Source of the DNA: Dimorphilus gyrociliatus
Lineage: Eukaryota; Animalia; Annelida
DNA length: 55,983 nt
Assembly (NCBI GenBank): GCA_904063045.1
Contig: CAJFCJ010000072.1
Coordinates: forward strand, 13,517-69,499
Reading direction: 5' to 3'
The notes under the pieces: model-generated
Told to the model about the DNA's origin: nothing
The model's input: the letters and a program-made list of their open reading frames with translations, nothing else
Database searches by the model: none
Shown: positions 2,922 to 55,983 of the stretch, piece after piece
Layout of the letters: every line of letters begins with the position of its first letter
Position numbering within the stretch: position 1 is the stretch's first letter
Position numbers and translations under genes: made by a program

Positions 2922-5402
2922 AAGTTGGGGTGCGAACATACCCAGGTACATTTACACCCTATTTTTGGACTTGTTTTTTTATTGAATTTTTGAATAAATG
3001 ATTTGGCTCTTAATCTATAAGTATGTATCTAAAAAGATTAAATATTATATTAATGAACAATAAAGATTGACAAATGATATTTATGCTGGAGAGTAGATAT
3101 GGGATGTTTGCATTAATAAATCAATTGATGTCAATTTGTTCAACCTGAAATCATCCCACAAATCAAAATTTTCTTTTGGATGTCAATGTACATTTTCTTT
3201 TATTGTTTGTAAGTACTTTCCTCTGACAGTAATTTCTCATAATTGCAATCAATTAAGACTCTTCTTTTAGCTCATCAACCAGCATGTAAAAATACCCCTT
3301 AGCAGGTAGCTTACTGTTCATTCTTTGATATACTTCATAAACATTATTGGTCCTTATAGACAAACCAAAAACTGACCAATTATTTGGTTTCCATAATTTA
3401 TTTTTGATCCAGTTTGTTTGGAAGTATTGCAGCTGGTCCAAAAATATATTTTTTTCAAAAAGTTCTGCATTTATACTGTTAAATGTTGGTTCAATAATAT
3501 GTGCTGGCAATTACATGGCCAAGAGCCTATTGAATCATATAAGTTATTCAATACCTAAAGTTCTATATATTTGAATGTAACTGACTTATATTTTCCTATA
3601 CACTGCTTGTGTGAAATGAAATACACAACCTTGAAATTCAGTGAGGGGATATACTTTTGATAATGCTTTCCATAGTCCTTTTTCAAAATCCATTGTAATT
3701 CTATTTGGGTGAAAATCATTGATAAGATTCTTCATATGATACAAAGAAGCAACTTTACTTATCATCACTTTTGAACAGATAATATGAAATATTGACAAGT
3801 TGATAAAATGGTTCTTTTACAATCTTGAAACTACCATCATAGTACCAACAGTTGGATTTTGATAATAAATTCAGCTGATGGTTTGTTGCAAAGATTAAAA
3901 TTCTTTCTCCATTTTCACAAATATCTTTCAGCAAAAATTCATCAGCCAAAAATGTTTCATCTAAATTGAAATTATACACTTTAGGTTCCACTGGCCTAAA
4001 CTTTTGTCTATTTGAGGTTGCCATTCTCTTTAAGTAGTTGATATCAGGAAGACAAGTAGTATTGGTTTCATAAAATAGAAGAACTTTTTCAGCAATGCTT
4101 CTTCCAGATGTTTGATTATCACTTCTGCAAACAATTTTCAAATCTGTTTTCACTTTAAAATCCACTTCTAAATTCTTTTTTCTGTTGTGATTATGTTCCA
4201 AATTGCCTTTGAGAAATAAATTTCCATTTTGTCTTATTCTGGCCACACATCTTTTCTTCTTACTTCTCACACTGCACACCCAAATAGTACTTGATAGTGT
4301 TTTATGTTTAACAAGAAAAGAATATGCATCATTCAGTAAAATGTCATGTCCCTTTCTACTTCCTCCTTTTACAATCTCAAAATCATTTTTTGTGGATGAT
4401 TCACAATATTCTTCAGCATTCTCCTCAACTTCCTCCAAAGAGTCTAGGTCCATTGATTGGCATTCTGAAAGAACATGATTTTCATCCTCCAATATTGATT
4501 CTTTAATTGCAGCAGTCCCATTTCTTTCATCAATTAAGCTTTCTTCAGAATTTACTTTGAATTTCCAGATTGGTTAACTTCTTCAGCATGACAGTACATT
4601 TTCTTTTGTTACAAGGTTTGCAAATTGGTATGTTAGCTGTTTCTATATGAATGTGTTAAAAAATATAATTACATGAAAGCTGATTAAAGAGTTACATACC
4701 TGTGCATTTCCTATGAATAAGGTTCTTACAAAGGCTGCATTTCAAATATTTTTACCTTTCATAAATTGTTGAATGACAATAATGACATTTGACAGCCATT
4801 TTATAATATCCAATCAAATGTAGATAGTTATCTAACAAAATTTCCAGTTATCAATAAATCTCCTTTCCAAATATTCAAAATGGCTGAAATTTTATTTATG
4901 CAATATATTGACCTTATTCACAATTGAAGATAATACATTATATCAAAATATCATGTATCAACAATCTCAATGATAGGATATAGATACTTACTTCTGTTAA
5001 ATCTTCCAAGAAGCACTTTGTTCAAATTTATTCAGGAAATATAACTTTACCTTTGCAAGCATAAATATTCCAAGTGAAAGTTTATTTAATAAAACTACCA
5101 CTATTAAAATGGCTGCTATTTCACTTTCAACAACATTTTCTTTTAAAGTAGTAATTAATATTGTTGGGATATGTATTCTATTTAATATCTGCATTCTATC
5201 TAATCAATATATTAACAAATATATCATGAAGGAAAAGAAGGAAAACAGGATGTCAATGTACATGTTTATTCAAAAATTCAAAAATAAAATAAATAGAAAA
5301 ATAGCATCCAAACAATCCTCAGTAGGTTCACACCCTGGTACTTTCCTACCTGACCCCATAAAATAAATAAAAAATAGGGCGTGAACATACCCAGGTAACC
5401 CC
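2922..5402 (-). mobile_element. Mutator-like (MULE/Phantom-type) element, near full length, defective; PHD-FLYWCH-MULE transposase
   Basis: FLYWCH (IWVCSVRSKKKRCVAR...HNH), WYYDGSFKIV, MDFEKGLW..GCVFHFTQAVYRK and RTNN motifs in 3253-4492. PHD exon MAVKCHYC..CSLC..HRKC at 4799-4700. Termini aagttggggtgcgaacatacc / gtgaacatacccaggtaacccc. Flanks gaaatattc (2913-2921) and aaaatattc (5403-5411) give an 8/9 TSD match. Confidence 0.9.
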
Positions 5403-8095: not shown

Positions 8096-11000
8096 TTAGC
8101 ATAAAAACGTCTTTCGTTTTTGGAGAATTTTTCTTAATATAACACCAAAATCATAAATATCTTGTTGTTCACTTTTTGATGTTTTTACACAAAGATCTTT
8201 AGCAGAAAGGAAGTATATATCATTGATTTTCTAAACCAAAGAAAACCAATAAGGTTTTATTAATACAACTACAATGTTCTTACCTCATAAACTATTGAAT
8301 TTATATTAAAAGAATATTTCAATGATAATTCTTTTTCATGAAGATACTTTATAGCCGAAATAATTTTTAAACTACATTTCAAATATTTGAAATTCTCATA
8401 GAACTCTTTACAAAAAATTGCTTCACTATTATTCTTCAGTTTCTCTTCATAATTAATATACAGAAAGTGTTTTTCACCACTTTTTACAAGATCTAATACT
8501 TTTAAATTTTAAATTTTAAAAATTCAAAGAATTTGACCAAAAAAAGAATAAAGAAAATTGGATTATATTTACAATTGTTACACCACATTTCACCAATGGT
8601 TCTCTTCCATTTAAGCTTATCATTTAGAATTTTATCTTTCTTCCTTTGATTTAACAAGATTATTTCATCAATTGAAAAAATTACCAAGTTTAATAGCACT
8701 TTTAAATATATAAATGTAGGAATTATTGCATCAACATCAGGTTTTTTCTCAAATACTTTAAAAATCATAAGAGGGCCTATTGAAAGATAAAAAAAAAACA
8801 GAAGAGTGTATTACGTAATGTGAAAGAAAACAAAACACCATAGTCAAAACCTAATATAGCTAAAGGAATTGATGTTAAGACATTAACAAGAATGATTGTA
8901 CAGACTTTTGAATATAGTTTAAACAATTTGATATTCATTTTTGTGTCACTACTAGTTTCTCTTGATGAATATTTTACATAGAAAGCAATTTTAATGTACA
9001 AAAATGTAATTAGTATAGTTATTGTTGGATTAAAAATGCAATAATGAAAATAATCAGTGTGAATAATGTGAATGGTCTTTAAAGCATGAATTAATTGAAT
9101 AAAATTCTCAATTCTAAAGAGACTATTTTGAATTGAGAGATATTTCAAATTGTTTAAAGAATTTATTGATATTGAATTTGAAATTGATTTTACACTGCAA
9201 TTGTTAATTTTTAATATTTTTAAATATTTTATATTTTTAAAAATCATAAATGAAAATTGGTTAAAAAAAATATCCGACATTTTGACAATTGGTATTGAAA
9301 TTACCAATTGTATAATTCGGTAATTGGCAATTTAATTCATCACTTCCCTGTATACAATTGATTTCTCCATTGCAAAGATTTTCAAGTTTAATATAAATTG
9401 TTTCATTCCAACATTTAAAATAACCTTTTGGTATAAAATTATCTGAAGAATGTATTAGGAACAAAATTTTTCATGGTTCTTATTGAGTACAGTTCATTTC
9501 CTACCACACTCAGTTTCATCATCTCCTAGGTAACATTGATGAATACCATCACAAATTTGTTCAATTGATATGCAAAAATCTTTTGAATGGCATAAATATT
9601 CACCAAAATTACATTTTGTTCTTACACATTTCCTATCTGGTTCATATAGATTTGTTATTGAAATCCCCATTGAGCTTACTCTATAGAAGCATTCAGTTAA
9701 ATTGTTTGTATCATATCTATATATTTCATATTCTACATCACAATCTATTTTTCCATCATTCATCAAGAAATTTGGAACACACTGCTCATTACATTTAAAT
9801 TGGGTGTTTTTGTTGCAATCTGAATGAAAAATATTTGATAGAGAATGATTAAATTGAAAATAGTTTATTGACTGATAATTTTTCAGTTATACCTTCTTTG
9901 AAATTGTTTGAAATTGAATTGACATTGTTACAAATTTCATCACTTGCATCCAAACAATTTCTCTCATTATTGCAAACATATTCTTCAGGAATACATTCAT
10001 TATTATGGCATGTCCTAAAATTAGAATAATGATTGTTTGCTCATTTATTAAACTGGGTGTATATGATAGAAATCTATAGTGACCCAATTAGATTATTTAT
10101 ATTCTTACCTTTGTCCAATTCTGCATTTAACATATTCTGAAAAAGAAAAGGAAAAAAACTAAATGAAATTTATCTGTTTTTTTTTTGGCCTAATCCAGTC
10201 TGCCCCAGATTTTAGTGCTACCCCTAAATCTTTACTAGAAAAAGTTCTATTAATAGTACCACCACATTCTAATTCGTCAGATTTGTCATGACAATCAAAT
10301 TTGAAATTACAAACTTTTACTAATGAAATATTTTGCTTTGATGTTAAACATTGAAAAAAATTGATTGAATTATTTCCTTCTTTTTGCTGTTCATCTTCAT
10401 TTGAAAAACAATCATTGTTTCCATCAGATACATAAATTATGTTTATGTATATTTCATATTTTGAACAATAGAATGCATTTGGATGTATAATTGTATGTTT
10501 TGTTGATGTAAACTGGTTAATATATGTAAGTTCCTTTTTAAATGCTACATTTGTATTCAATATTTAGAGGAATTTAAATAGAATATTCCATATTTTGTTT
10601 TTACTTAAAGTCTTTTGGCAAGTTATAAATTTTTGCCACTTCCCTATACAGCTTTTCTTTGAATATAAAACATCTAAATATTGTGTGAAGTATATTTCTT
10701 TTATCTATTGGCAAATTGCCAATAAATATCAATAAAATATTTTTGATATAGAGATATTTACTGAAAGTTGAATTTTAAACAAAATACTTTCACAATTTAA
10801 CCTAAAGATTTCAGAATTTTTTGAAAATTTTCCATTTATATTTTCAATACTCATTCTATGCTAAAAAAAAGACAAAAGAGTGAATCACTAATTGGAAAGT
10901 GGTGAAACTCTTTCCCAATTAGTACTTTATTATAAAATGGAGGAATACTAATTGTTCTGCCACCTGTTGTCACAAAAATAATTTGATTTCTCGTATACTC

Positions 11001-13775
11001 TTTTCTGTCCAAGACTGAAACAAATAAAAGAAAAGGTTATTATTCAATACTGAAATAAGAAAAATGGTTTTACTTTGAAAACCAAATGGATTGTTAGGTG
11101 AATATTTGTCAATGTTTGGCGCTTTGACAGATGATAAGAATAGACTGACAAATAATGAATTTAATGTTGAATAATCAGAGTATGTTAAATTCCTTTTTTT
11201 ACAAAACTCTTTCATCTCTGATATTAATGCTACTCTATTATATTCAAAAGTATAATAGCAGACATCATAGATGAGTAGAGCAGACTTTGTTGGGCAATCT
11301 GTTAGTAAAAAAAACAACAGAATATTTTTGATTAACTAAACAATAGAATTAAAAATATTTCAGTTCTTACTTTCAATAATATTCTCATAGGAACATTCTA
11401 ATGAATATGGCAGCCATTTTATGAATGTTCTTTTAATGGTTTACAAGATTTTATTAATATATTTTATAAAAAGAAAAACTCTTTACTTTCTATTTTTAAA
11501 AATACAATGTGAAAGTGATGAATTTTTACATAGTATTGTTTCAAAACTTTCAACATTGTCTATTTCATATTGTTCATGTACAGGTAAGAATTCATCTATT
11601 CTTGATTCTTCAACTATTTTCCCATAATTGAAACCAAAATATTTACAAATAACACCAATTTCAAAATATTCAATATATTTAAGAACATGCCAGGAATTTA
11701 TGTATAAAATTTGAAAAACACCTGCCAATTTCTGATATTTTTTATCAATTTCATAAATTGCAGTTGATTCTTTCAAATTATAAAATTGATATTCTATAAT
11801 TAGAGATAAAGAAGAAATGTTTTACAAGATTTTCCTGTTAAGCTATGGCTTCAAAAAGTTGGATAATTGGATTATTACTATTTTTTCCCTGTTTAGTATA
11901 ACAGTAAATTTTAGCTTCATATATTTTTTTTGAAGTTGTCCATCTCATACTACAACTTTTATAACCTGATTTACAATTTCCAATTGTCAATTTCTAGAGA
12001 AAAAAAATATATATTTATTTTCTTGATTTAAAAATTTAAAAAAGTTCAAAAAAAAAAATATTTTGTATTTCTTTTTACATGTCCTTCTCTTCGTTCTGTT
12101 ATAAAAGAACAATTCAATGAATTGGCATTCATTGAAAAAAAGTGACAGACACTTTTACATAACTTTAAAGGAAAGGAATTTTTTTTAAAATGTGGTGTAA
12201 CTAGACCATAGTTTTTTGATTCAAAAAATATTTCATATTCTTTTCCAAACATGGTGAATAGTTGAAAAGATGAATAATTGTTCATATCATGTCTCATAGG
12301 AGTGAGATCTGGGGAGAGGGTGATAGCAAAGAATAAGCAAAAGAAACCAACTATTAATTCAAATCTCATACCATTTAAATAACGAATAGAACAATGAATT
12401 CGTTTGGAGAAACTCCTACTGCCATTTAAAATGTTCATTTTCTCATCAAAATGGATTTTTTTATTGATTTTTTCAGATAAATTTCTTGATATCAGAAATT
12501 CACTTTTTGCACAAAATTTTTTTGTTTTAGCAACATTTCCATAAATTTGAAAATTGGTTACATTTGCTCTAAAATATAATTCAATTTGTTTTATTTTCTT
12601 ATTGAAATTTGCAAAAATATCTGAAAAGCAAAGAGAAATTTGTATATCTTCTCTTTTACACATCAATACCTACATGGAACATGTTTTTTGAAACATTTTA
12701 AACTGATTCCATTAATTATTTCATTTTCATTTCCAGGTTGACTTTTAAAAGTTAAAGTTTCAAAAAAAATAAATCTTTTGTATTTTATTTCACTGGAAAC
12801 AAAACTTACAAATAACAAGTCTTAAAACAGTTTGAAAATATATAATATTTATAATTATTTTCCCATTTGGAATATTTGCCAAGGATAGACAAGAGAAAAG
12901 AGATTATCATAGCCAATTGCAGAACAAATTTGAATCAATATATTAATAGGCAGTTTTTTGAATTGAATATGAAATGTATGTAATGGAATTTTCTTTATTC
13001 TCATCTTTAATACTCCTATATCATATTTATCTTCCACTCTATATGTATGGAAGAATAGTTGAACATCTCTCAAACTTTGTATTCCAGGTACTGCAAAAAG
13101 ATTTTATTGTTGATATTTAATGTGCAAAAGATATAACTACTTTTAAACTCATTTTCACAAGCTGTTGTCACAACTCTAATTCTGTTTGTTTGAGGATAAT
13201 TTAAAATAAAACAATCCATAATGTTTGTATTAAAATCACTGCAAGGTTGAATTATAGGAAAATATTTCTAAAAATAGAAAAAGTATCTTTAAAGTAGAAT
13301 TATTGATTATTTTGGTTGTTTTTTGGAAGATAAGAAACTTTTGATGTAATTATATTTGATTTACAAGTAGAGTTTATTGGTATTTGTTTATTTATATTCC
13401 AACAAATAAATAAACAACATTTATCAATTTCCAATAATCTACTAAAAGCTAAAGGTAATTTTCCATGAGATTTAGTTTCAATGATATATTTCCACTTTTT
13501 TAAATCATCTCAAATTTGGTTGTAATGTTTGAATCAGTTGCATAAGAAATGGAATGAAAATTGTCATATCCCATATTTCCATAAATTATTGATGGAAGTT
13601 GTCTTTGTTCATATTCAAAATGGAGAGAGAACATTTTGTTCTTAAACAAAATCTTTAAATATCCTTCAACATAATGTTCATTTTCATTAATAATATCCAA
13701 AAAATAATTCTTCTCATCTTCAAATATTTCCGCTTTAATTAAATGACAAAACAATAGAAATATTATTGAAATCAT
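8096..13775 (-). pseudogene. Multi-exon GRL101-like receptor: signal peptide, several SRCR-like, C-type lectin-like, LDLa repeats, short LRR, TM5-7, C-terminal kinase-like domain; frameshifted, TM1-4 absent
   Basis: Signal peptide MISIIFLLFCHLIKA at 13775. SRCR-like ORFs 13500-13775, 12855-13073, 11483-11776; lectin-like 10970-11317; LDLa ORFs 9261-10560. LRR and TM5/TM6 in 8777-9307. In-frame phase-1 intron 8850-8777 joins TM6 to TM7. Kinase-like motifs KIISAIKYLHEK and QQDIYDFGVILRKIL lie across an in-frame 53-bp intron (8283-8231). Confidence 0.8.
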
Positions 13776-18093: not shown

Positions 18094-19286
18094 TTATCTT
18101 CTTCTTTGGCATGTTTCCAGTCCATCTTCTCTTTTATGGGAATGGGGTTTTTTTCCAGGATAGAATTGATCTTCCAATTGATTGACACTTGCTGGGCATT
18201 TGTTGTTCTTATTCCTTACACTACATGTCCAAAATGTTTTTGTTGACCTTTTCATCTTTATTGTAAACATATAACCATCATAGGCCAATAGGTCTTTACC
18301 TTTTTTACTCATTCCTTTCAGAATTTTGAAAGTTGGCTCCATATCTACTCTTTTTGATGTTGGAGAATTTATGAAAGAAGTTTCCATCAAATTATTTGAA
18401 TCCTGTGAATGATTTTCTGTTGTGATTTCAATGTTACACCCAATCATTAGATCTGTGCTGTTGTTTTCAACAATAACATCATTATCATCAACATCTGTTC
18501 TCATATTTCTATCACTTTCTTTTTCATTTTCATAAATATCTGGACCATTACCAACAACATCATTCATAGTATTTTGAACTTCATATGTCATCTCTACTTC
18601 CTTTTCCACTTCAGAGTTCACTGTTTTGATTTGACTAGTAGACAGCTGTTGTAAGGTGACCAAACATGTTCTCTTAGAAATATCTTCACAAATATTGCAA
18701 AGAAAGAGATGATTTTCTGTTAATACAATCATTTAAAAAAATTATATATGCTATAAAATTGAATTTAACCTACTTTTCATGCATTTCTTGTGAATTATTA
18801 CCCAATGGTGACATAGTTGACACTTTGCTTTATGCTGTCTTCCAACCATTTTCTCCTTACAATTGTAGCAATATGCCATTATCTATCAGTAAAAAGAGAG
18901 AGTTACCCCAAAATCGCTGCTCAAATATTTTAAAAGAGATTTTACTAATTAAAGTTTTACCTTAAACTGATTCAATTTAAAAGAATTATCAAGAGATATT
19001 CTGGTGTATTGAATTTTTTTGATATTGTGTTGTACTTGTGTAATATCCTTTTCAGATAATATTTGAATCAAACTCTCCTTTGTATGGAACAAAAACAGGA
19101 AATCATAAACAGGAAATAGTTCCTCAACAAAATGGAGAACCTGACATTGCATAATTTTTATTATCACTACAATGTACATACATTATTAATTTTAATTTCC
19201 ATGGCCATTTTCCCCTATAGACTTTTTCCACTGTGGACATTTCTCCTGTGGATATTTTCTCTTGTGGACGTTTTCTCCATAAACCG
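18094..19286 (-). mobile_element. 5' half of a MULE/Phantom element (PHD + acidic linker + FLYWCH), 3'-truncated
   Basis: FLYWCH GKDLLAYDGYMFT..FWTCSVRNKNNKCPAS..PHSH in ORF 18094-18732. PHD exon MAYCYNCKEK..CQLC..HKKC at ~18870-18770. Subterminal tandem repeats (ggagaaaacgtccaca-like) at 19200-19286. Confidence 0.82.
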
Positions 19287-29574: not shown

Positions 29575-30132
29575 TGTGGATATTTTTAAAATTATTTGTA
29601 ATGCGCTCAAAAAATCTTCCAACTCTTTAAAAATAATTCATCTTTACAACTGTTTATTAAATGCTAAACAAGCAGAAAGTCTGAGAAAGACATTTAAAGA
29701 GTGAAAATAATTAGTCTTTATAACTGTGAATTAAATGATGATCAAGCTGAATGTCTGGGAAAAGCATTGAAAGATTGTTCAACACTTGAAAATATTAATT
29801 TATCTTTCAATACAGATATGGGATATGGATTTAAAGTAATATGTGATGGATTCCAACCTTCTTCTAACACTTTGAAAATAATTAATTTTTCATCCTGTGC
29901 ATTAAACAATGATCAAGCTGAATTTCTGGGAAAAGCATTGAAAGAGTGTTCAACACTTGAAAATATTGATTTATCTTTCAATAATGATATGGGAAGAGGA
30001 TTTAAAGTAATATGTGATGGACTTGTATCTTCTTCAAAAACTTTGAAAGTAATTAATTGTTATTCCTGTGCATTAAGTGATGAACAAGCTAAATGCCTGA
30101 GAAAAACTTTCAAAGATTGTTCATTACTTTAA
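29575..30132 (+). pseudogene. RNI-like/NLR-type LRR-only gene, internally deleted
   Basis: Repeats of CSTLENIxLSFNxDMGxGFKVICDGL..SSxTLKxINxxxCxLxDDQA. An additional repeat upstream (29580-29700) is in a different frame. Paralog of 45380-46075. Confidence 0.78.
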
Positions 30133-31099: not shown

Positions 31100-34000
31100 G
31101 TACTCAGGTATGGTTTCACTCCTAGTCTTTATTGAATAGGGGTGAAACCATACCTGGGTGAAACCATATCTGAGTGAAATCATACCCATGGCAGGTGAAA
31201 CCATACCCATAAGAAACTTAGTTGTCTTATATTATTAAATAATAATAGTTAAACCAAAAACAATAAAAAGATTGTTAGAAAATAAAAATACAGACATTTT
31301 AAAATTGAAGAAGAAAATTAAGAAAATTATGTATTAAGATTTTCATTATGCATGTTATCTTCCATTGGAAAATATTGAATTTATTTGATAAAGAATGTTC
31401 AGCCATTTTGAATAAATGCTAATTATAATTGTTTGTTAGATAGCATTATTTATAGTGAATATTTTCAGTCATTATTGAAATATGGCAGTTAAATGTAAAA
31501 ATTGCAAGCTTGTTGTACATGGAAGACAGAAGAGAAAATCCTGTGTGCTATGCAATGAAATTATTCATCAGAAATGCATCATAAGTATCATTATATAATC
31601 CATATGATTATTATAATTATTCAGCTATTTCATTCATATTCTAAGGTGTCTGTTTGTCTGGATTGTGAAAAGGGAAAGTGCCTCCTTCAGACCATCAGAC
31701 CTGAAGGCATAGAAACTGGTGATGTGGATGGAAAACTGAAAAATTCAATTAAACATGAACATCAAAATGCAGAAAGTCTAATTGAGTTGAATGATAGTCT
31801 TTCAAATGAACCAGAGTTTGATGATGATGGAAATTATGATAGCTGCAACATGAATGAAAAAGAAATGGAAGAACATATAAATGAGGATGTCATACATGTA
31901 AATCTGAATGAACATGCAAATGTGAATGACAACTTTCAAGCAATTAAAGGTGGAATTCAGTTGGGAAAAGACATTCTAATCAATGACAGATTTTCATTTA
32001 CATTGAAAGCTAAAACTTCTAAAAGCAACATTTGGGTTTGTAGTAAAAGGACCAAAAAACAACTGCAAGAATACACCAGCAGGGGAAAATATTTATAAAG
32101 GAAAAGTTAGAACACATTCATGGTAAAAATGATGAATATGGTAGAAAACAGCCAGGATTGAAAACAGCCAGAGGCTTGATTGAAAATGGCCAGAGGTTTG
32201 ATTGAAAACGGCCAAAGACTTATTTGTATAAAGAAAATGATAAGTATGATATAGATGTTAAACAAATATTGGAAACTTGAAATGATAATAATAGTCAGAA
32301 GTGATTTATTTACTAAAACAACATGAAAAGCACCATACTAAAAATAAAGCACTAAAAGTAACTACTTGGACTAAAAGAATAACATGCATCTAATGTGAAA
32401 AATATATTTTAGAACATTTTTCTAAAATCTCAGCAGCTGTTATTTCACCATTTTTAAATTTCTCCCAAGTTTCAAATATTTCCTTTTGTATGTTTAAATA
32501 GATTTTTTTCTGTAACCTCTTTAATTTCTTTTCTGAAAGCATTTGTTGATAAATTGGAATGAGATCAGCCTCTCTTTTTAGTTCATCTATCAGATTGTAG
32601 AAAGATTTAGAATTGCCAACATTTATATTTAGCCTATTGTGGAATCCCTCAACATCATTATTTATCCTGATTGGAGATTCATAGGCTGACCAAGAAGAGG
32701 GTGTCCACATGCTATCTTCAATCCAAGTATCCTCAATATAAGTTATTAGGTCCTGCAACTTCTCAGTTGCTTTCAAATGTTGTTTTATCTAAAAAAATTC
32801 ATTTGAAATAACATCAGCAGGTAGGAATGGTAAAGCCAATAGCTTTTGCATTTCAATCCATTGCCCAAAGTGGTTTTTATATTCACCAGAATAACCCAAT
32901 TCATATGAAAACAAAAAGAAAATTAGTTTTAAAGAAAATATTCAACACAAAATGAATTTGTACTTGAATCTTTCTGAAAACTGCCTGAGTCCAATGAAAT
33001 AAACAGCCTTTTACTTCAGAATCTCGAAAATGCTTTGTAAATTCTTTCAAATGGCTCTTTCAAAATCTACCAATACTTTCTTTGGTGATTTTTCAGCAAT
33101 CAATTTTTTATAGCCTGCAGAAATATTTGTAGACTTTGGTAAAAATATTAATAATATACCTTAAATAAAAGGGGATAACAGATTTTCTTTTTTGATGATG
33201 TCATTGCAAAAAGAAGAGGAACTTATTTCAAAACACCATCTCTTTTTAGAAATGAGTGAATGGAAAACAGCTGTTTGAATGGAGGATTTACAACTTTAAA
33301 AGTTCCATCTAAAAACCACATCTTAGAAGAAGCCAGAAGTTGAAGTTGGTGATCAGTTGCAAAAATTATTATTCTTTCATCTTTTTTGTGAATATCCTCT
33401 CTGAAAAATCCATTTGGAATAAATGTAAAATTGATCAGAAAAGCTATTGATTCAGATTCCTTTGGCCTGTTTTTTCTCCTTTGATAGTTAACAATTGCTT
33501 TTGATGTTGACATCTTTGGAAAATTGGACACATTTTCATTTTCCAGGTAAGAATCTTCAACTATTCTTTTGCTGCTGACATTTAAATCTTTATTTGCTCT
33601 TTCTCTTATTTTAATGTTCATTTCTATGATCTTTTCCAAATTTGCTGTTGAAGGATGAATGTGCTGCTTAGAGCCAATTTGACAATTACCTTTATATTCA
33701 TTTATGCTTGCAGGACATTTTTTGTTTTGATTTCTCACACTGCATCTCCATATTCTAAAGTGTTCTCCATGTCCTTTTATAGTATATGAATAACCATTAT
33801 GAACCATTAATGGTTTTCCTTTTTGGCTCCCATTCTTTGAAAATTCCAAATGCTCATCTAAGTTAGCCTCATCCATTATGTCTTCAAAAGAGCTTTCTAT
33901 TTGATTTTGGGCATCAACTACATTAATATTATCTTCTTGTATGATTTCAGTTGTCATGCACTCTTCTTCATGATCAACTTCCATGATATTTTTGTTCTCT

Positions 34001-35340
34001 GGAGCAGTATGCAGGGCCTCACAATAACTTGTTAGCAATTCTCCTTCCAATTGAAATGTGGTAACAACAGCTTCTGTCATGCTATTCTCTTCCATTATTT
34101 CATCAGGAGTTGAAGCTTGGCTGTCCACTTCCATTGGATTGTTACCTTCAGTTTCTGATTGTTGAAGAAGTATGGAAATGTTATCATATTTGTTCAAAAT
34201 TACTTTTAATTGGCATTTGTTGATTGTTGTACACATTGAGCAAAAACCATCTAAAACAATAACTTTAAAACTTAATCAAAAATAATAATGAAGTGTTACC
34301 TTTTAGACATTTCAAATGAAATTTTTTCTGGCTTAGAGTGCATATGGATCCATAATTTCTATATATTTTCTTTTGGCAACAAAAGCAACAAGGAGCCATT
34401 TCAAAAGTGCTCTCATAAAACAAAACCCCTTTCTATGAAAAAGCAATCCAAAATTTTCTGAAAAAAAACTGAAAACAAGGATAAAGAAAGATGTTTGTAA
34501 TTGTAACATAAATCACACAGTAATTGTGCTATAATACATGTTTAAATTATCAAATTTATGAATATTACCTAATGGTTTCAAAGAGAAAGTTTCAAAATCA
34601 GTGAAATATACACTATCCAAAAAAAGAAACTGATAAATTTATTTACTACTGATATTATCACTCAAACCCATAAAAAATCATTTAAATCATGCAATCATAA
34701 ATATGTTAATTATTTAATAATATTATTATGTTTATCATTTTCTATATACAAATAAGTCTTTGGCCATTTTCAATCAAGCCAATGGCCGTTTTCAATCCTG
34801 GCCATTTTCTACCAGTCCCAAAATGACCATCTAACCAGACATCAGAATTAGAAAAGATTTGAAAGAAATGTGTAAAAGTGACACAAGTTCAAGTGGAAAG
34901 AGATTAGCTGAAACAATTCTGTTAAAGCACAGCAATCATACAGATTCTGTGCCAAATGTTGATTATCTGAAAAGAGTTGCTAATTTCACAAGGCAAAAAC
35001 TAAGGCCCAAAGAACAAAAGAAGTGGACTTTGATTAAAATAAAGATTCCAGATGATTTTTTGCAAGTTGATGTCTATGAAAATACAGAAAAAATTCTTAT
35101 TTTAGCTAGCAGCCACAAAATTAATTTGCTTGGTAAATCAAATCACTGGTTTATTGATGGAACATTCAAGATTGTGAAGGCTCCATTTTATCAGCTCTTA
35201 TCTATACACAGCTATGTAAAATAAGATGGAGAAATGAAACATGCTCCCATAGCATTTATCTATATGACATCAAAAAAAAGAAAAAGCTATAAAAAGGCAT
35301 TTAAGGTATAATTATGAGCAACTTATTTTCAACTTTTCAA
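31100..35340 (+). mobile_element. MULE (PHD-FLYWCH-transposase) split by a nested MULE; 3'-truncated
   Basis: ggtgaaaccatacc terminal repeats at 31105-31210. PHD MAVKCKNC..CVLC..HQKC at ~31481. FLYWCH at 31950-32133. Coding resumes at ~34828 (DLKEMCKSD..WFIDGTFKIVK), collinear with the 3755-4492 transposase. Confidence 0.85.
32134..34819 (-). mobile_element. Nested near-full-length MULE with ~110-bp TIRs; defective
   Basis: Long TIRs built of ttgaaaa(c/t)ggcca units at 32134-32250 and 34735-34819. TSD aaaatgat / aaaatgac. PHD exon at ~34399, FLYWCH and WFLDGTFKVV in 33223-34236, DFERAI..GCLFHWTQA, and RINNDVEGFHNRLN in 32390-32776. Confidence 0.92.
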
Positions 35341-37419: not shown

Positions 37420-39321
37420 TCATTGGCTCAGAGATGTAGATATGACTATTACTGAAGAGAAATTGTAAGAGTTGTAAAGACAACCATAATTTCTCCAATA
37501 CAAAATGTCACCTTCCTCTAGACTTAATAAAATAGATCTTGTTATTACGTAACCTCTGTCATGTCTAGCCTGTTTTTTTGTTATAGCAATCATTTTTCCA
37601 TTTAGATACATTCTTATATCTAAAGTTTCTCTTGGTCTTGGTACAAAAGAAAATTCAATATAGTACATGCCAGATTTTTTAACCAAATATTGATTCCTTG
37701 TTATATCCCACGAATCTGTTGAATCAACGTTTATCTCTGGGAAACGTATATTTATAAATTCGTCACAAGTTTGTAGTTTACCCGAAGCCATAAAACGAGG
37801 CAAACTAGTATTTAGTCTAAAAGCACTTAGATAGGTTTCATAGTGTGAGCTAGACACAGGTGTTTTGTTTCTAGTACCAGTTCTTGATATAAAAACATCT
37901 CCAGTATTGACGTGAATAAGGGAACTCCTTGAAAATTGATCAGTTACTTGTTGCCTTCTAATATTTATCTCTAGAAATTTGTGCGTTTGTTGTACAACAT
38001 TGTTTTTTGAAATTTCAAGAATTAATTTTGTCGAATCAACTAGACCAGTACCGCTAAAACCCGCTTTCATACCCATAGAAACCAAATACCATCCACCATT
38101 CGATGCTCTAAATTCAGTTAGATCACTCTTTTCAGTGAATCCTTTCATTGCCGATATAATGGGCCATGGTATTTTTGGCTTATTAATTCTTGTACGACTA
38201 GTACAATATAAATAATTACTTGTATCATAGTGGAAACCAAGGAAAGATGTTTCTTTACCTTCTTCACTACTGTAAACATCTGTTGTAATTCCAGTTGATA
38301 GAACTGGTTGAGCAGCATTAGCCAATTCAAAAATTCCATTCCTTGAAAATGTTTCTGGACCATATGATGGTAATGCTTTACGTAAAATTCCCAATGAAAG
38401 TCCAGAATTTCTTATTCTCACGTCTATTGGTTTCAGTTTTGATGAAGTTATAATCATTGAAAAGAAATAAAATCCAGGTTTATTTATTGTTATTCTGTTT
38501 GTATTTGGGTCAAACATTCCCCCAGAATTCAAATTTACCACTGTCCAATTAAAATAGCCCTCATTGAGTGTTGTAGTTTCCTTTAATGATACCATAAAAG
38601 CAGGATTTCCTGCCACTGGACAAGGATTGGATGAGCATAATTCCGTTTGTATTGATTGACCTTTACAGTCTTTTCCACCATTCGATGGAGGAGGATTATT
38701 ACACATTCGTGTTCTTGTTCTATTCCCAACTCCACACAACTGACTACACTCGCTCCAATCTGACCAATTATTCCATCCACCATCAATAGGTTGCGATCCA
38801 CCATCAGACGACCTGCACATTTCATTCGAACACTTTTCAAAGTCATAAATTGGATTGAATTTTGTGAGAGGAGGACATTGTTGTACCCAACCATAACCAT
38901 TCAAGCAGTTGTAGTAAAAACTAGGCTCAGTAGAACTAGGGACAGTACTGTTCAAATTTGGATGGCATTCGCCAACTTTTGCACCAACTGCTTTCCCATT
39001 AAGTATGGTTTTTAGGGAGGAATTTTTCAAAATATTGATTTTGTTCAATTGGTTCTTTTTCAAAGAACATTTCGATTCACTTGGTTGTACACAAGCAAAA
39101 TATTGACATTCAGTAATAACAATCTTAAAATGTAGACCAGGAGGACATTGTTGACCATAAGCTACACCATTGTAACAATGATAGTAAACACTACAAATTG
39201 TAGGATGTCTAAATACGCCATTAATTGGTTTTTCATCCGAACCAATAGGACAAACAAAATTTGAGTTTGTCCTTTCCAATAAAGAAATTACTAAAAGTAA
39301 ACAATAAAAAGTTAATTTCAT
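37420..39321 (-). CDS. Intact intronless 633-aa secreted protein: signal peptide, 2x chitin-binding peritrophin-A (CBM14), TSP1, 3x C1q-like domains
   Basis: MKLTFYCLLLVISLL signal. Two C..YY.C..G.....CP....F repeats. DGGWNNWSDWSECSQLCGVGNRTRTRMCNNP TSP1. PAF..N.GG.FD....I..PGFYFFS and two further C1q-like units (GWYLVS; GMYYIEFS..YLNG). Confidence 0.92.
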   Translation of the reverse strand: MKLTFYCLLLVISLLERTNSNFVCPIGSDEKPINGVFRHPTICSVYYHCYNGVAYGQQCPPGLHFKIVITECQYFACVQPSESKCSLKKNQLNKINILKNSSLKTILNGKAVGAKVGECHPNLNSTVPSSTEPSFYYNCLNGYGWVQQCPPLTKFNPIYDFEKCSNEMCRSSDGGSQPIDGGWNNWSDWSECSQLCGVGNRTRTRMCNNPPPSNGGKDCKGQSIQTELCSSNPCPVAGNPAFMVSLKETTTLNEGYFNWTVVNLNSGGMFDPNTNRITINKPGFYFFSMIITSSKLKPIDVRIRNSGLSLGILRKALPSYGPETFSRNGIFELANAAQPVLSTGITTDVYSSEEGKETSFLGFHYDTSNYLYCTSRTRINKPKIPWPIISAMKGFTEKSDLTEFRASNGGWYLVSMGMKAGFSGTGLVDSTKLILEISKNNVVQQTHKFLEINIRRQQVTDQFSRSSLIHVNTGDVFISRTGTRNKTPVSSSHYETYLSAFRLNTSLPRFMASGKLQTCDEFINIRFPEINVDSTDSWDITRNQYLVKKSGMYYIEFSFVPRPRETLDIRMYLNGKMIAITKKQARHDRGYVITRSILLSLEEGDILYWRNYGCLYNSYNFSSVIVISTSLSQ

Positions 39322-45379: not shown

Positions 45380-46075
45380 TTAATTAATGTCTGTAAAAAA
45401 TATTCTAATATCAGAAACTCCACTATATCTATCTTTCACATCTTTAAAATCATTTAATTTACAAGCATTAAGACAAATAGTTCTCAAAGAGCTTGCAGAA
45501 GATTTGAGTCCATCAGATATCACTTTAAACCCACTTCCCATGTGTTTATTGTGAGACAAATCAATATGTTCAAGTGTTGAACACTCATCAAATGTTTCTC
45601 CTAGACATTTAGCCTGTTCATCATTTAATTCACAGTAAAAAAACCTAATTATTTTCAAAGTGTTTGAAGATGATTTGAGTCCATCACATATTACTTCAAA
45701 TCCATTTCCCATGTATTTACTGTCAGACAAATCAATATGTTCAATTTTTGGACAGTCTTTCAATGTTTGTCCCAGATATTTAGCTTGTTTATTAACTACT
45801 CCAAAGTGTGAAAGATTAATTTTTTTCAAAGAGTTTGAAGATGATCTGAGTCCATCACATAACACTTTAAATTCATATCCTATGTTATAATTCTCTGATA
45901 AATCAATGTGTTCCAGTGCTGAACACTCTTTCAATGTTTCTCCTAGACATTTAACTTGTTTATTTTTTAAATGACATTGTTTTAATATAATTTCTTTTAA
46001 ACAGTTAGAAGATGATTTGAGTCCCTGACATATAATTTTGAAAGAATCCAACAATTCTTTGTTTGAGACATTCAT
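45380..46075 (-). CDS. Intronless 231-aa RNI-like LRR-only protein
   Basis: Open ATG-to-stop ORF made of alternating ~28-aa LRRs (LKxIxLxxCxLxxxQxKxLG / LEHIDLSxNxxMGxGFxVICDGL). No NACHT domain seen upstream. Confidence 0.88.
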   Translation of the reverse strand: MNVSNKELLDSFKIICQGLKSSSNCLKEIILKQCHLKNKQVKCLGETLKECSALEHIDLSENYNIGYEFKVLCDGLRSSSNSLKKINLSHFGVVNKQAKYLGQTLKDCPKIEHIDLSDSKYMGNGFEVICDGLKSSSNTLKIIRFFYCELNDEQAKCLGETFDECSTLEHIDLSHNKHMGSGFKVISDGLKSSASSLRTICLNACKLNDFKDVKDRYSGVSDIRIFFTDIN

Positions 46076-50283: not shown

Positions 50284-51241
50284 AGATTAAAACTATGCAA
50301 TTTCTAAATGAAACAAGTTTGTTCCCTTATCCTTCTTTTATGGAAAGATTTTAATTAATAGTTGATTTTAGAGAAACTACCTTATTTTTTCAGTTTATAT
50401 TATTACAATATACACAAAAAAAGAAAGATGAAAGGAAAAATAAGAAAATTTTATCTCTAAATCAATCATAACAATAATTTGGATAAAAATTTGACAACTG
50501 AATAGGCCTATAGCAGTGAGTCATGAACACCTGAGTTCTAAGTTTATAGGTTGTGAAAACAATTTGGCCTTCTATTTATTGATCTCTTGAAGGATTTTCT
50601 TTTAATGAATTCATAGTAAAAATTGCCATTTTTGAAAGGGGAAGTATTGAAATGAATTATCAGAAATGTTTCGTATTAACATTTACTTTTTCTGTCAATA
50701 CTTTTGTTTCAATCAAAATCCTAACATTTTTATTTACAATCCAATAAACAATTCTTATCAATATACCATGTGTTCCCACAGACTTTTTATCACTACATAT
50801 TCTTATCACTTTAGATAATGTAGAAAGATCTCACAGACAAGATAGTTAAACTACCAGTTTTTTCAATTCCATTTCCCTCACATATGTGTTGGCATGATAC
50901 AGTCTTATCTAAAGCTGATTAAGTTTGGGGCATGTTTCCCACATGGTTGTTCATATGGCTTATATATATTGTAAATACATTTTGAAACAATTCATTAGTA
51001 GTTTGAAGATTAAGGAGTAAATTCAAAGTAGCCAGTTAAATGTACAGCTATTAAAAAATCGTCCTGTTTCTCTTTTTTGACAAACACTGAGTCCTATTTC
51101 AAACCACAGTACGTCAAAATTATATTGATAAAATCCATCAGTATAATTAACAGAAAAAATATATTATATTGCCATGAAAAGAAAATTAAATGGAATTTTT
51201 TAAAAAAATTCCATTTAATCATTTTTACAGTTTTTTTTACA

Positions 51242-53755
51242 GATATAGAAATTATTAATCCTGATAATGGATATGACATTACTAGCAATTATGAGACAAA
51301 TCAACTGCTAACCTCTTCTGAAAGCAATAGTGAATGGGATTTTAATCCAGAATCTGATAGTCATGCTGCTAATTCAATGCAAGAAGAATTAAGTATCTGG
51401 ACTAGTTCTGACAATGACTCAATTATTCTTATTGATTCATCTGAAGAGGAGACTGAAATTACAAATATTTCAGATAGTGAGTCAATTATTACTATAGATT
51501 CAGTCACAGATGCAATTGAAAGTAGCCTTGAAGAAATGGAAATGAAGACCCAGTACATAGAATTGGAAGATGGAATAACTGTAGCAGTTGAACCAAAACA
51601 AGAAACTTCTGATGGTGAAACAAGAACCAATATAAGAAGAACTAGCAGGAAACCAATGTCATGGTTATCATTATGGTTGACACTTATAATGATTTTCAAC
51701 TGCAGTAGTCCAAGCACAGTCCCAAAATCATTGTACCAAGGTGCTGCTGTTACAAGTGCAAACATAACTTTAACATTTAAGCCACCCTTATATTTCTGTT
51801 CTAATCAACTACCTACTCAGGCATTTGATCTAGCAGAGGAACCTGTTTGTAGCATAGAAGGCCAGCAAACAAAAAAAATAACAGCTGACATCTATGAATT
51901 GAAGTTACATGAAATTGTAACAAGGGCAGTCAAATGTAAAGTGTATCTAAGAACTAACTTTTACATATATTATTTCTTTGGAGCAAAGAAGAGGAGAATT
52001 GTTGATTCAATTATCAAACTAACACCTGAACATTGCAGACAGATGGTTAAAGACAAACAATCTTTCCAAGGAAAAGCCTTGACTGTTAGAAGCAACACTT
52101 GGATCTACAGAGATAAATTCCCAGAAGCATATACATGGCCAACAACTACAGAAGTCCTAGAATATACCACCATCATGCAGTTTGGAAAAGCATATTGGCA
52201 ACCTCCAAATATGAAAATTACTACCAATCTTGACTACCTAGAAGACTGTCTACCAGGGCAGTCATACTGTGAAACAGAAGAAGCTATTATTGTCTTAAGA
52301 AACCTTAAAAATAATTACACTATTGGACAACAATCACCATGGAAGAAATTGGTAACCAAGTTAGCTGTATAAAATTTGCTGGTCACTATTCTTGCCCAGG
52401 GTATTCTATTCTAGACATCCCTTACCAAGACAAATTCATTGATAGTATTGGTGGCCCTGGAACCAAAGTACTAGTGCCATTAGAAGAAAGGAATCTGATA
52501 TTGGAAACAGCCAGTGAACACCTATACCAAGCATTACACTATCATAGGATTGGAGAAATTGAAGAAAAATGATTATTAAACTATCCCAATAAAGTAAAAG
52601 AACAACTCACATTATATAAACGTAACAATCTTTTACCCAGCCTTAATGAATGGTATAGAAACACTAACACAAAGTATAAATTAATGAGAGCTAAGGGTAA
52701 ATTGAGAGAAATTGTGACCTATCACTTGCAGCAACCTATTAGTCCATCACATTGGGAGTTAGATAACTACTATATTGAAGAAATGTTAAAAGCAGTAAAA
52801 ATATAAATTCTCACTACAAATAAGAGAGGCTGCCCAAACATCTCCTCTGCTACAGTTCACTGAGCAATTATCAGGACTACTATGCAATCAATTTGTACAA
52901 TGAAGTAGAATGATTGCATTACTTGCAAACCTGGACCCTCAGCTGACCACTGTATTGACAGACCAGTTGGGTATGCACAGCAGTCAAATGGGAGAACTAG
53001 CAATAGTTAAGCAATGTTCACCAATAGCTTCCACAGAAGTAGTTTGTGACTTAGCAATAATAAAGAAGGATAACAAATGTTCCCAATTCTTAATTGTTGC
53101 AATGAATAACCTTCTCTTTCAGGTAGAACCTGTTACTCATGTTCTATGGCAAGTTAATTTGGAACAGATTACCTATAATGACTGCAAAACAAAGAAGCTT
53201 TTCTACAAAACAACTCATAACCCTTTGAGCCCTGTAAGAACTCAAACAATGAAAGACAAAATGTATGTTTATTATTCTGAAAAAGGATGCAAATTTCACA
53301 CTGTATCTGCAAAATCAATGCAGCTAAAGATCAATAATCAACTGTCTGAACCAGAGCTGGAAATTGCTAGGCTAGCTGACCTACTCCATCATGGGATAAA
53401 GAAAGATATTGGGTACCAACACTCAAAAATACAGCAAGCAATTGAGTCACTGGAACAAAATCAAGCTAGATATGATAGCATGGTACATATTGCAGAAGAA
53501 AATGGCATTGTACATGGTCCATCTGGAATTAAACAATTTTTTCATCATTGGTATTACCAGCCTGGAAAAACACTTTACATCACTTTATGAAATATTTGCT
53601 TGAGTATCCTAGTATTGATAATTGGTGTTATGATTATCCACAATTGTAGAGTGAGAAACAAGCAAAAGCCTGTAGAAAACACCATAAATGAGATTGAAGA
53701 TGACTTCTCAGAGCAGCCCATTCCTAACACCAAGCCCAGGAAAAGATCAATCTGA
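51242..53755 (+). pseudogene. env: LTR-retrotransposon env remnant (acidic pol-tail-like linker + class III-like fusion glycoprotein)
   Basis: Acidic linker, RRTSR, hydrophobic WLSLWLTLIMIF, Cys-rich ectodomain (KCK..YYFFGAK..EHCRQM; YTWPTT; LDPQL..MGELAIVKQC), TM ICLSILVLIIGVMII after a TGA, short tail ending 53755. At least two frameshifts and several stops. Directly followed by a PPT and LTR. Confidence 0.85.
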
Positions 53756-54475: not shown

Positions 54476-55250
54476 TCAATGTGGACTAAACCCAAATAGT
54501 TCTGACTTGGCCATTCTAAGCTTCTTGTTAGGTGGTGATGATGTGTGTTTATAAGTCAAAGAAGACCTTTTAGATTGTGGATCATAGAGGTGTACCCATG
54601 TTTCATCTCCAGTCACAATTTTTTCTAAAAAGTCTCTTCCTTCTGCTGTGTATCTTTCAAGTAGCTCCATACAATGACTCACCCTCACCTGCTTCTGAAC
54701 CAGATTGAGAGCATAAGGAATCCATTTTGCATAGATCTTTCTGTATCCTAGCTCCTTTATAATTTTCCCTACAGTCTGTTGACAAATGTCTATTTGTTGG
54801 GCGATTGCTCTCTGAGAAATGGTCCAATCTTCTCTGATAAGCCTGTCAATTTCTTCTCTATTCTGACCTGTTACAGCTGTGCTTGGATGACCAGATCTTG
54901 CCAAATCTTCAAAATTTTTCCTTCCTTTTTTTATGTCAGATACCCACCTCCTTATTGAGCTTTCACTCAGAGTTTCATCCCCGCAAAAGCTTTTTAACAG
55001 CTTATAAATTTGTCTCGCAGACACCTTCTCATGCACTAAAAATGCTATGATTGGTCATTGATCGGAACATATGCACATGACTTGCAGTTGCTTATACCAA
55101 AATAAATTTGTAATACCTCAACAGAATCAAATGAAAGTTTGCACAGTGAAAGTTTACTAATTTCCTAAGATTATTGGAAAGTATCAATGATATTAGTTAA
55201 GCCATTTTAAAATTACAGCACAGTGATTGAAACTTTTTATTTGTACCTAA
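54476..55250 (-). mobile_element. Mariner (DD34D-type) transposon, 5' half
   Basis: HTH SIRRWV..F..ED..RSGHP, KWIPY.L and IVTGDETWVHLYDP. TIR-like ttaggtacaaataaaaagtttcaatcactg next to TA at 55251-55252. The N-terminal DQ*PIIAFL carries a probable CGA>TGA stop. Truncated at the 3' end. Confidence 0.9.
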
Positions 55251-55347: not shown

Positions 55348-55983
55348 TTAATAATTTTTCCAATGTAATTGCTTTTGTAATAAAGTTCTTAATGACAAAG
55401 AAGCTTTTAAAATATCCTCACTACAATGATCATTTGAATGGTAATTTGCTCTTGAAAAAGAAACAAAATATTTTCCATCTATATTGTAAATATTTTTTAA
55501 ATCAATTCCATCATTTAGGGAAAACATATAGCTATGACAAAAGTCAATTGCTATGAATATTTTCATTGTTAAATTGTAAATTTCATTTGCTGTCATTTTC
55601 TTATTAAAATTAACAACACAATCCTTCTCTTTTCGAACATTTTCCAAAGCAATGTGTTTTGAAGCAGCTCCTTGATAGAATTCAATCCCTGACAACAAAA
55701 GTATGTATGCAGTTGAAGGAAAAATATTAATTATACAAAAAACATTTCTAACATTTTCTTCCCATTTCATTTTCAAAAAATTTTTTCTTTGCTTCACTGA
55801 AATGAGATGACAAAATATAAAATGAGAAAGATATGATGGAAATCATATACTTGCCCCCGCTTTTTAAGCAGTAATCTAAATTGCAGGGAAGTATACAAAA
55901 ATGGATTTAAAACTGAATTGATTGGCAAGCAGACTGTTATAATCCAAGCATAAACATCATTTGAAATATTTATTTTTCTTATA
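55348..55983 (-). CDS. 3' end of a GRL101/LGR-type GPCR (TM7) followed by a kinase-like (pseudokinase) exon; gene extends beyond the window
   Basis: 55982-55851 translates ISNDVYAWIITVCLPINSVLNPFLYT (LGR TM7). An intron-like 55850-55797 segment follows, then ORF ..KIFIAIDFCHSYMFSLNDGIDLKNIY..SEDILKASLSLRTLLQK, homologous to 8096-8620. Confidence 0.78.

Follow-up and report, generated by a model that had tools for sequence, protein, structure and literature searches.

A stretch of 55,983 nucleotides from the annelid Dimorphilus gyrociliatus (NCBI GenBank assembly GCA_904063045.1, contig CAJFCJ010000072.1, positions 13,517 to 69,499 of the forward strand), referred to here in its whole length as the window, contains on its minus strand a large receptor gene, the last exons of which run from position 9307 to 8096. 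We consider it probable that this gene belongs to an expanded family of receptors with LDLa modules and leucine-rich repeats (LRRs), in which a cut-down and catalytically dead kinase domain forms the tail, and that the copy in the window is a deletion derivative. The window is AT-rich, with a G+C content of 24-36%, and its introns are very short, about 55-80 bp. The genome as searched comprises 77.9 Mb in 349 contigs, and the copies of the gene elsewhere in it are named here after their contigs. The features of the gene in the window are as follows, in the direction of transcription; TM stands for transmembrane helix, and a slash marks a boundary or junction.

13503..13775, minus strand: first coding exon, an open reading frame (ORF) with the signal-peptide-like start MISIIFLLFCHLIKA, 49% identical to the C144 copy and 72% to the C5 copy.
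9243..13509, minus strand: ectodomain exons, with LDLa modules found by Pfam and an exon order that matches the paralogs; the more N-terminal of these exons are without a Pfam match.
8851..9307, minus strand: exon for the last LRRs, the LRR C-terminal cap (DYFHYC), the second half of TM5, inner loop 3 and TM6, assigned from Pfam LRR_14, a class-A TM5-TM6 profile and hydropathy.
9035..9043, minus strand: deletion junction, TAT TGC / ATT, with about 657-665 bp gone relative to the paralogs.
8777..8850, minus strand: intron 1, 74 bp, GT..AG, phase 1; the boundaries G/GTTTGAC ... ATAG/GC are kept in the C144, C50 and C322 copies, at lengths of 54-74 bp.
8573..8776, minus strand: TM7 exon with a basic linker (QRKKDK...), ending GEMWCNN, assigned from the translation, a hydropathy peak and 56-62% identity to the paralogs.
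8499..8572, minus strand: predicted intron 2, 74 bp, phase 1, t/GTAAAT...AAAAG/, with an alternative donor t/GTAACA at 8581.
8284..8498, minus strand: tail exon 3, with beta4/beta5, hinge, helix E (..AIKYLH) and a degenerate catalytic-loop position, LSLKYSFNINSIVYE, assigned from profile alignments, PDB profile matches and hhalign.
8231..8283, minus strand: intron 3, 53 bp, GT..AG, phase 0, kept in four paralogs, between ..SIVYE and KINDIYFLS....
8096..8230, minus strand: tail exon 4, with the beta7/beta8 position (IYFLSAKD, no DFG) and the helix-F-like segment QQDIYDFGVILRKILQKRK; coding to 8099, stop codon TAA at 8098-8096.

In exon-by-exon tblastn, the locus and the C144 copy are colinear over their whole length, starting at the signal-peptide exon (13784) and reaching the last exon, and every exon compared is an open reading frame. 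Pfam finds two LDLa stretches at 10162-10560 (Ldl_recept_a, E 9e-11) and further LDLa matches at 9264-9464 (E 2e-5, 25.4 bits, above the cut-off) and 9497-9766 (E 7e-5, 23.5 bits, just under the cut-off). These bear out the LDLa part of the architecture given in the initial annotation of this DNA, which was made from the letters and their ORFs. The same architecture included SRCR and C-type lectin (CTL) domains, which we could not confirm: neither had a Pfam match at E <= 1 in the exon-by-exon scan of the locus, and the only matches were to LDLa and, weakly, to LRRs. The LRR matches at the locus are sub-threshold (LRR_14, E 5e-4, in the 8851-9307 exon); a close paralog gives LRR_8 at E 1e-5, and its stretch from the LRRs to TM3 aligns to the relaxin receptor RXFP1.

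The best solved relative is RXFP1. The C50 paralog aligns to it with E 1.2e-10, from the last repeats to TM3, and L025, an intact related gene from a public contig, matches it at E 3e-6 and Pfam 7tm_1 at E 2e-4. Of the 31 matches to a profile of the TM5-TM6 exon, 30 are class-A receptors, aligned at TM5-loop-TM6, with a best E of 0.0012, and because of this the TM6 label of the initial annotation holds. Judged from the RXFP1, 7tm_1, class-A TM5-TM6 and LDLa matches together, the family is one of class-A G-protein-coupled receptors with leucine-rich repeats (LGRs) of the LDLa-bearing type, similar to the relaxin receptors and GRL101.

The membrane region of this copy is incomplete. In the paralogs, 657-665 extra bp lie between F.YC/CYVWK at the LRR cap and ..SYC/IFNP in TM5, with TATTGT at both edges, whereas at our locus the LRR cap abuts the second half of TM5, reading ..DYFHYC/IFNPTITIL... 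Split tblastn matches and the comparison with the paralogs show that the missing segment is TM1 to mid-TM5, including the outer-loop-2 intron, and that it has been removed in frame. In the assembled sequence, this has the form of a clean in-frame deletion, in which about 0.66 kb is gone from between two TATTG(T/C) microhomologies. The hydropathy plot retains three hydrophobic peaks at the locus. Four and a half of the seven helices are lost; all seven are present in the C144, C50 and C322 paralogs. TM3 with its E/DRY motif, which reads ERY, DRH and DRY in the paralogs, is absent. TM7 is degenerate, with NLVIFSIDEI in place of NPxxY, and the close paralogs likewise read NL.IF.IDEI, while a paralog at 55.3 kb keeps NPFLY. 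Since three peaks remain, the ectodomain would still be outside the cell and the tail inside. However, without TM1 to mid-TM5, the copy cannot act as a seven-helix G-protein-coupled receptor (GPCR). An intact seven-transmembrane (7TM) core had been implied for this locus, and the deletion had been overlooked.

Downstream of TM6, C144, C50 and C322 keep all three GT..AG introns at the same positions and in the same phases, although the intron lengths vary and are not multiples of three. The intron at 8850-8777 had been described as in-frame. Its GT..AG borders, its length of 74 bp and its position after ..TSIPLAIL + G agree with that description, but it is not strictly in-frame, as it changes the reading frame. 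The next exon encodes, as expected, a hydrophobic segment resembling TM7 and then the basic linker QRKKDK...GEMW, and the 53-bp GT..AG intron reported at 8283-8231 was also found, in phase 0, ahead of the stop codon at 8098-8096.

The initial annotation had placed a 1-nt shift in a tttaaaa tandem at about 8510, which would make the gene an intact 7TM receptor running into a kinase-like domain broken by a frameshift, due either to a homopolymer error or to a pseudogene lesion. The reading frames are in fact offset by one base across 8582-8498, and the stretch has many A/T runs, as such an error would lead one to expect. However, a canonical phase-1 intron spans this spot, and the C144, C50 and C322 copies have it at the same place and in the same phase, with the same donor motif (t/GTAAAT or t/GTAAGT) and acceptor, in other lengths and sequences. 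No frameshift is required, because the phase-1 intron at 8572-8499 restores the frame, and the 7TM region that the frameshift explanation takes to be intact is incomplete here. The site is predicted to be an ordinary conserved phase-1 intron. We have rejected a frameshift or homopolymer error at about 8510, which now seems extremely improbable.

The joining of receptor and tail is not a chance juxtaposition, as had been argued from the start. A profile of 38 tails (A2) finds at least 145 places in the genome at E <= 1e-3, a count that is a lower bound, and tail exon 3 alone finds many relatives there. TM7 and the tail lie within one ORF in the copies P0031 and P0032 and are spliced together in the close paralogs, where the module keeps its three introns and their phases. 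The genome-wide comparison of paralogs also gives intact 7TM genes (C144, C50 and C322) that share the tail introns. The conservation of splice phases, which had been extended to the paralog at 55.3 kb, applies to the close subfamily but not to that paralog, in which the tail is a single ORF. This ORF (55351..55797, minus strand) is, as proposed, a true relative of the tail and belongs to a second, more distant family member, with the NPFLY-bearing TM7 just upstream, outside the window. A mariner/Tc1-like transposase ORF (54476-55036, minus strand) is located just downstream of the 55.3-kb tail, outside its coding region.

Most of the 145 tail matches are on small contigs (C34 to C322), and about half contain stop codons, some of which are introns. 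Because the matches are mostly on small contigs, the family appears to occupy poorly assembled, probably repetitive or polymorphic regions of the genome. The family has well over 100 copies and is apparently lineage-specific.

The evidence that the tail is derived from a kinase comes from weak sequence matches and from predicted structures. The module matches beta4/5, the hinge, helix D/E, the catalytic-loop position, beta7/8 and helix F. When the tail profiles A1 and A2 were compared with all PDB sequences, kinases accounted for 33 of 33 and 17 of 19 matches, respectively, with best E values of 0.05-0.1, and the matches are in the correct register at helix E (..YLH), the catalytic loop and beta7/8. 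An hhalign comparison with 18 kinase domains of the same genome, performed as a single pre-specified test, gave P 0.0015 and a probability of 17% over 23 columns at helix E. The homolog P0020 aligns with Pfam Pkinase at positions 170-199, in helix F, with E 0.017, and a second homolog gives E 0.053; the best homologs score 15 bits against Pkinase, for which the cut-off is 31.7 bits.

The tail lacks the catalytic residues of a kinase. The absence of HRD and DFG, already noticed in the initial annotation, is seen both in the translation and in the alignments. The catalytic positions read LSLKYSFNINS and YFLSAKD, with no HRD..N, no DFG and no activation segment with APE, and the beta8 position is followed by the helix-F position after about 12 residues. 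The N-lobe motifs (Gly-rich loop, VAIK Lys and helix-C Glu) are absent from A1 and A2, in which about 25-40 residues stand ahead of the helix-E equivalent. With no N-lobe, HRD, catalytic Asn, DFG or activation segment, the tail cannot bind ATP or phosphorylate.

AlphaFold models were made without templates for two contiguous homologous tails from different subfamilies, which are 22-59% identical to the exons of our locus. The P0003 tail, from an intact LDLa-LRR-7TM gene, was modeled with a predicted local distance difference test score (pLDDT) of 90 and a predicted TM-score (pTM) of 0.80. Every match listed for this model by Foldseek is a kinase, with probability up to 0.99, TM-score 0.4-0.61 and E >= 0.08. 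VIA-align, which is independent of Foldseek, gave kinase folds for 50 of the 50 top matches, at Z 9.2-7.1, the alignments covering 84-109 of 110 residues; the top matches for the P0003 model include Rad53, the RNase L pseudokinase, Rio2, IRAK4 and NFR5. The model of the 55.3-kb tail has a pLDDT of 87, and nearly all of its top 50 structural matches are kinase folds, with Z up to 10.7. Both homologous tails are thus predicted to contain the core fold of the kinase C-lobe (helix E, beta6-9 and helix F).

Several results weigh against a kinase origin of the tail. None of the sequence comparisons with kinases is significant (PDB E 0.05, hhalign 17%, no Pfam match above the gathering score), and the exon-by-exon Pfam scan of the locus gave no match to a kinase domain. 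A profile search of 1.84 billion proteins gave 39 matches at E <= 1e-3, with neither a bona fide kinase nor an annotated full-length receptor among them, and without any annotated receptor of another phylum. Short ORF fragments on AT-rich Logan contigs make up nearly all of the matches. The best of them, the 3084-residue protein P0001, is matched in 24 short stretches and is probably not a relative but an artefact of low complexity or repeats. The structural evidence consists of predictions for homologs, not for the protein of this locus, and Z values of 9-10 are only moderately over the stated background of the tool, 7-8. All this, together with the missing catalytic motifs and Z values that come as low as 7, near that background, would fit a family-specific small alpha/beta module unrelated to kinases, the YLH and DIYxFG motifs and the fold being due to convergence or predictor bias. 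We regard such a module as unlikely. Almost all of the weak matches are to kinases, and their register is correct at two separate motifs, one made up of helix E and the catalytic loop and the other of helix F. Each of the two template-free models, which come from different subfamilies, gave kinase folds for about 50 of its 50 top matches, over 84-109 of 110 residues, and the hhalign result came from a pre-specified test. Kinase ancestry, as inferred from the predicted fold and the weak sequence signal, is most likely. The kinase likeness first noted at this locus is therefore retained for the family, on these weak matches and predicted folds, but it is not carried by any significant profile match, and the exons of the locus itself have none.

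Granted a kinase-derived tail, is the copy in the window still a working gene? It might be a three-helix receptor, comparable to a receptor-like kinase or a decoy, in which the LDLa/LRR ectodomain signals through the kinase-like tail without a G-protein core. The deletion preserves the reading frame exactly and leaves the ectodomain outside and the tail inside, the compared exons are open, and the three downstream introns have canonical sites. Furthermore, the ratio of nonsynonymous to synonymous substitution rates (dN/dS) against the paralogs is 0.2-0.55, as it is between intact paralogs, although this ratio is no guide to whether a gene is live or has recently become a pseudogene, because a recent loss of constraint would be invisible to it. 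However, half of TM5 makes a poor membrane anchor, and the nearest paralog, C5 (about 70% identical; L061, C5:28000-37999), is a pseudogene with a stop codon in TM1 and with the LDLa block and TM3-TM7 deleted. Because C5 is plainly dead, decay by deletion appears to be common in this subfamily. Both tail exons of the C5 pseudogene and the intron between them are still open and canonical. A working three-helix receptor thus seems rather doubtful to us, and a recently disabled copy is slightly more likely. Taken as a single gene, the locus is probably a decaying copy.

We suggest the following course of events. A protein kinase domain would have been trimmed to the part from beta4/beta5 to helix F, about 115-125 residues, carried after TM7 on small spliced exons, and this module would have become established as the cytoplasmic end of the receptors in an LGR family that has greatly expanded. 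At the locus described here, a deletion of about 0.66 kb at TATTG(T/C) microhomologies would then have removed TM1 to mid-TM5 in frame, leaving three helices. The tail may connect the receptor with a partner in the cytoplasm, by offering a surface for docking or dimerisation.

The nearest known receptors are the type C LGRs (RXFP1/RXFP2 and GRL101), which, like the intact paralogs, have LDLa modules, LRRs, an LRR C-terminal cap and a rhodopsin-class 7TM domain; the GRL101 receptors have been described as LDLa-rich (PMC8286064). They differ from the copy in the window, which lacks TM1 to mid-TM5, and from its subfamily, in which TM7 lacks NPxxY. In addition, the Dimorphilus receptors have a kinase-like module after TM7 and more than 100 members in one small genome. 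No description of a kinase-like tail on RXFP, LGR or GRL101 receptors was found in the literature searched.

Fusions of GPCRs with kinases are known from oomycetes, amoebae, choanoflagellates and sponges (PMC12716839, PMC5784254, PMC6033456, PMC3206951). They have originated repeatedly, and none has been functionally characterised (PMC12716839); the GPCR-TKs are reported only in choanoflagellates and early-branching animals (PMC12716839). GPCR-TKL/K, GPCR-TK, the oomycete GPCR-bigrams and GPCR-PIPK (RpkA) resemble this family in combining a seven-helix receptor with a C-terminal kinase-type domain. However, they carry a full, Pfam-detectable kinase on other 7TM families, whereas here a bilaterian LGR carries a half-sized remnant without the motifs. 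A 7TM domain and a tail in one protein are seen at the family level, with the tail below Pfam recognition and a 7TM class unlike that of the published fusions.

A dead kinase fold also serves as a regulatory or docking module beneath a membrane receptor, with the kinase-homology domain of receptor guanylyl cyclases, IRAK3, plant NFR5 and RNase L as examples, and the last three are among the top structural matches of the tail models. Receptor pseudokinase domains retain both lobes, and many still bind nucleotide. By contrast, the tail module is without any N-lobe and ends after helix F.

Other genes in the window include a fragment of a second LDLa/LRR receptor gene at 256-1779 on the minus strand (Pfam LRR_8 E 2e-14, with a weak LDLa match). 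Its membrane part and tail would fall to the left of the window, and a transposase-like ORF overlaps its LRR exon. ORFs of ribonuclease-inhibitor/NLR-type LRRs of about 28 residues (..CL..L..C..LE.I.LS.N...G..) are found at 29701-30132 (plus strand) and 45380-46075 (minus strand), and these LRR ORFs, taken with the receptor genes, point to a clustering of genes of the recognition type. An uninterrupted ORF of 633 residues at 37420-39321 (minus strand) has a signal peptide, a WSxW/CSxxCG motif of the thrombospondin type and C-terminal halves that are repeated, and its product looks secreted.

Five ORFs, at 3755-4492, 18094-18732, 31574-32098, 33223-34236 and 34859-35224, share the motif ..KG(K/H)D.L..(D/N)GY.F....(K/R)....W.C...., which in some of them is followed by ..ILIFAT..QL.LL.....W..DGTFK.... 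They look like repeated transposase-derived genes of a FLYWCH/MULE-like kind. Large plus-strand ORFs at 51077-53590 lie in a stretch that was labelled in the initial annotation as a long terminal repeat (LTR) retrotransposon with a herpesvirus-gB-like envelope gene, and this fits the 'Dingle' elements (PMC7854359).

What is new here is the loss of TM1 to mid-TM5 in this copy, and no paper describing the tail module was found in the literature searched. The locus corrects a gene model, with an intron in place of a frameshift, and it is a natural deletion variant that parts the tail from the G-protein-coupling core. A wider and quite speculative reading is that a bilaterian relaxin-receptor-type GPCR captured part of a kinase as a fixed output module and expanded to more than 100 genes, possibly as an immune-type repertoire; copies with in-frame deletions, which retain the ectodomain, the topology and the tail but not the G-protein-coupling core, would then show that the tail signals alone, as happens in receptor-like kinases or pseudokinases. 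If hormone-type receptors of a large family in a bilaterian worm do carry a tail derived from a kinase, this would extend the theme of GPCR-kinase fusion to ordinary bilaterian LGRs, in a compact and tractable genome for asking what such a tail does.

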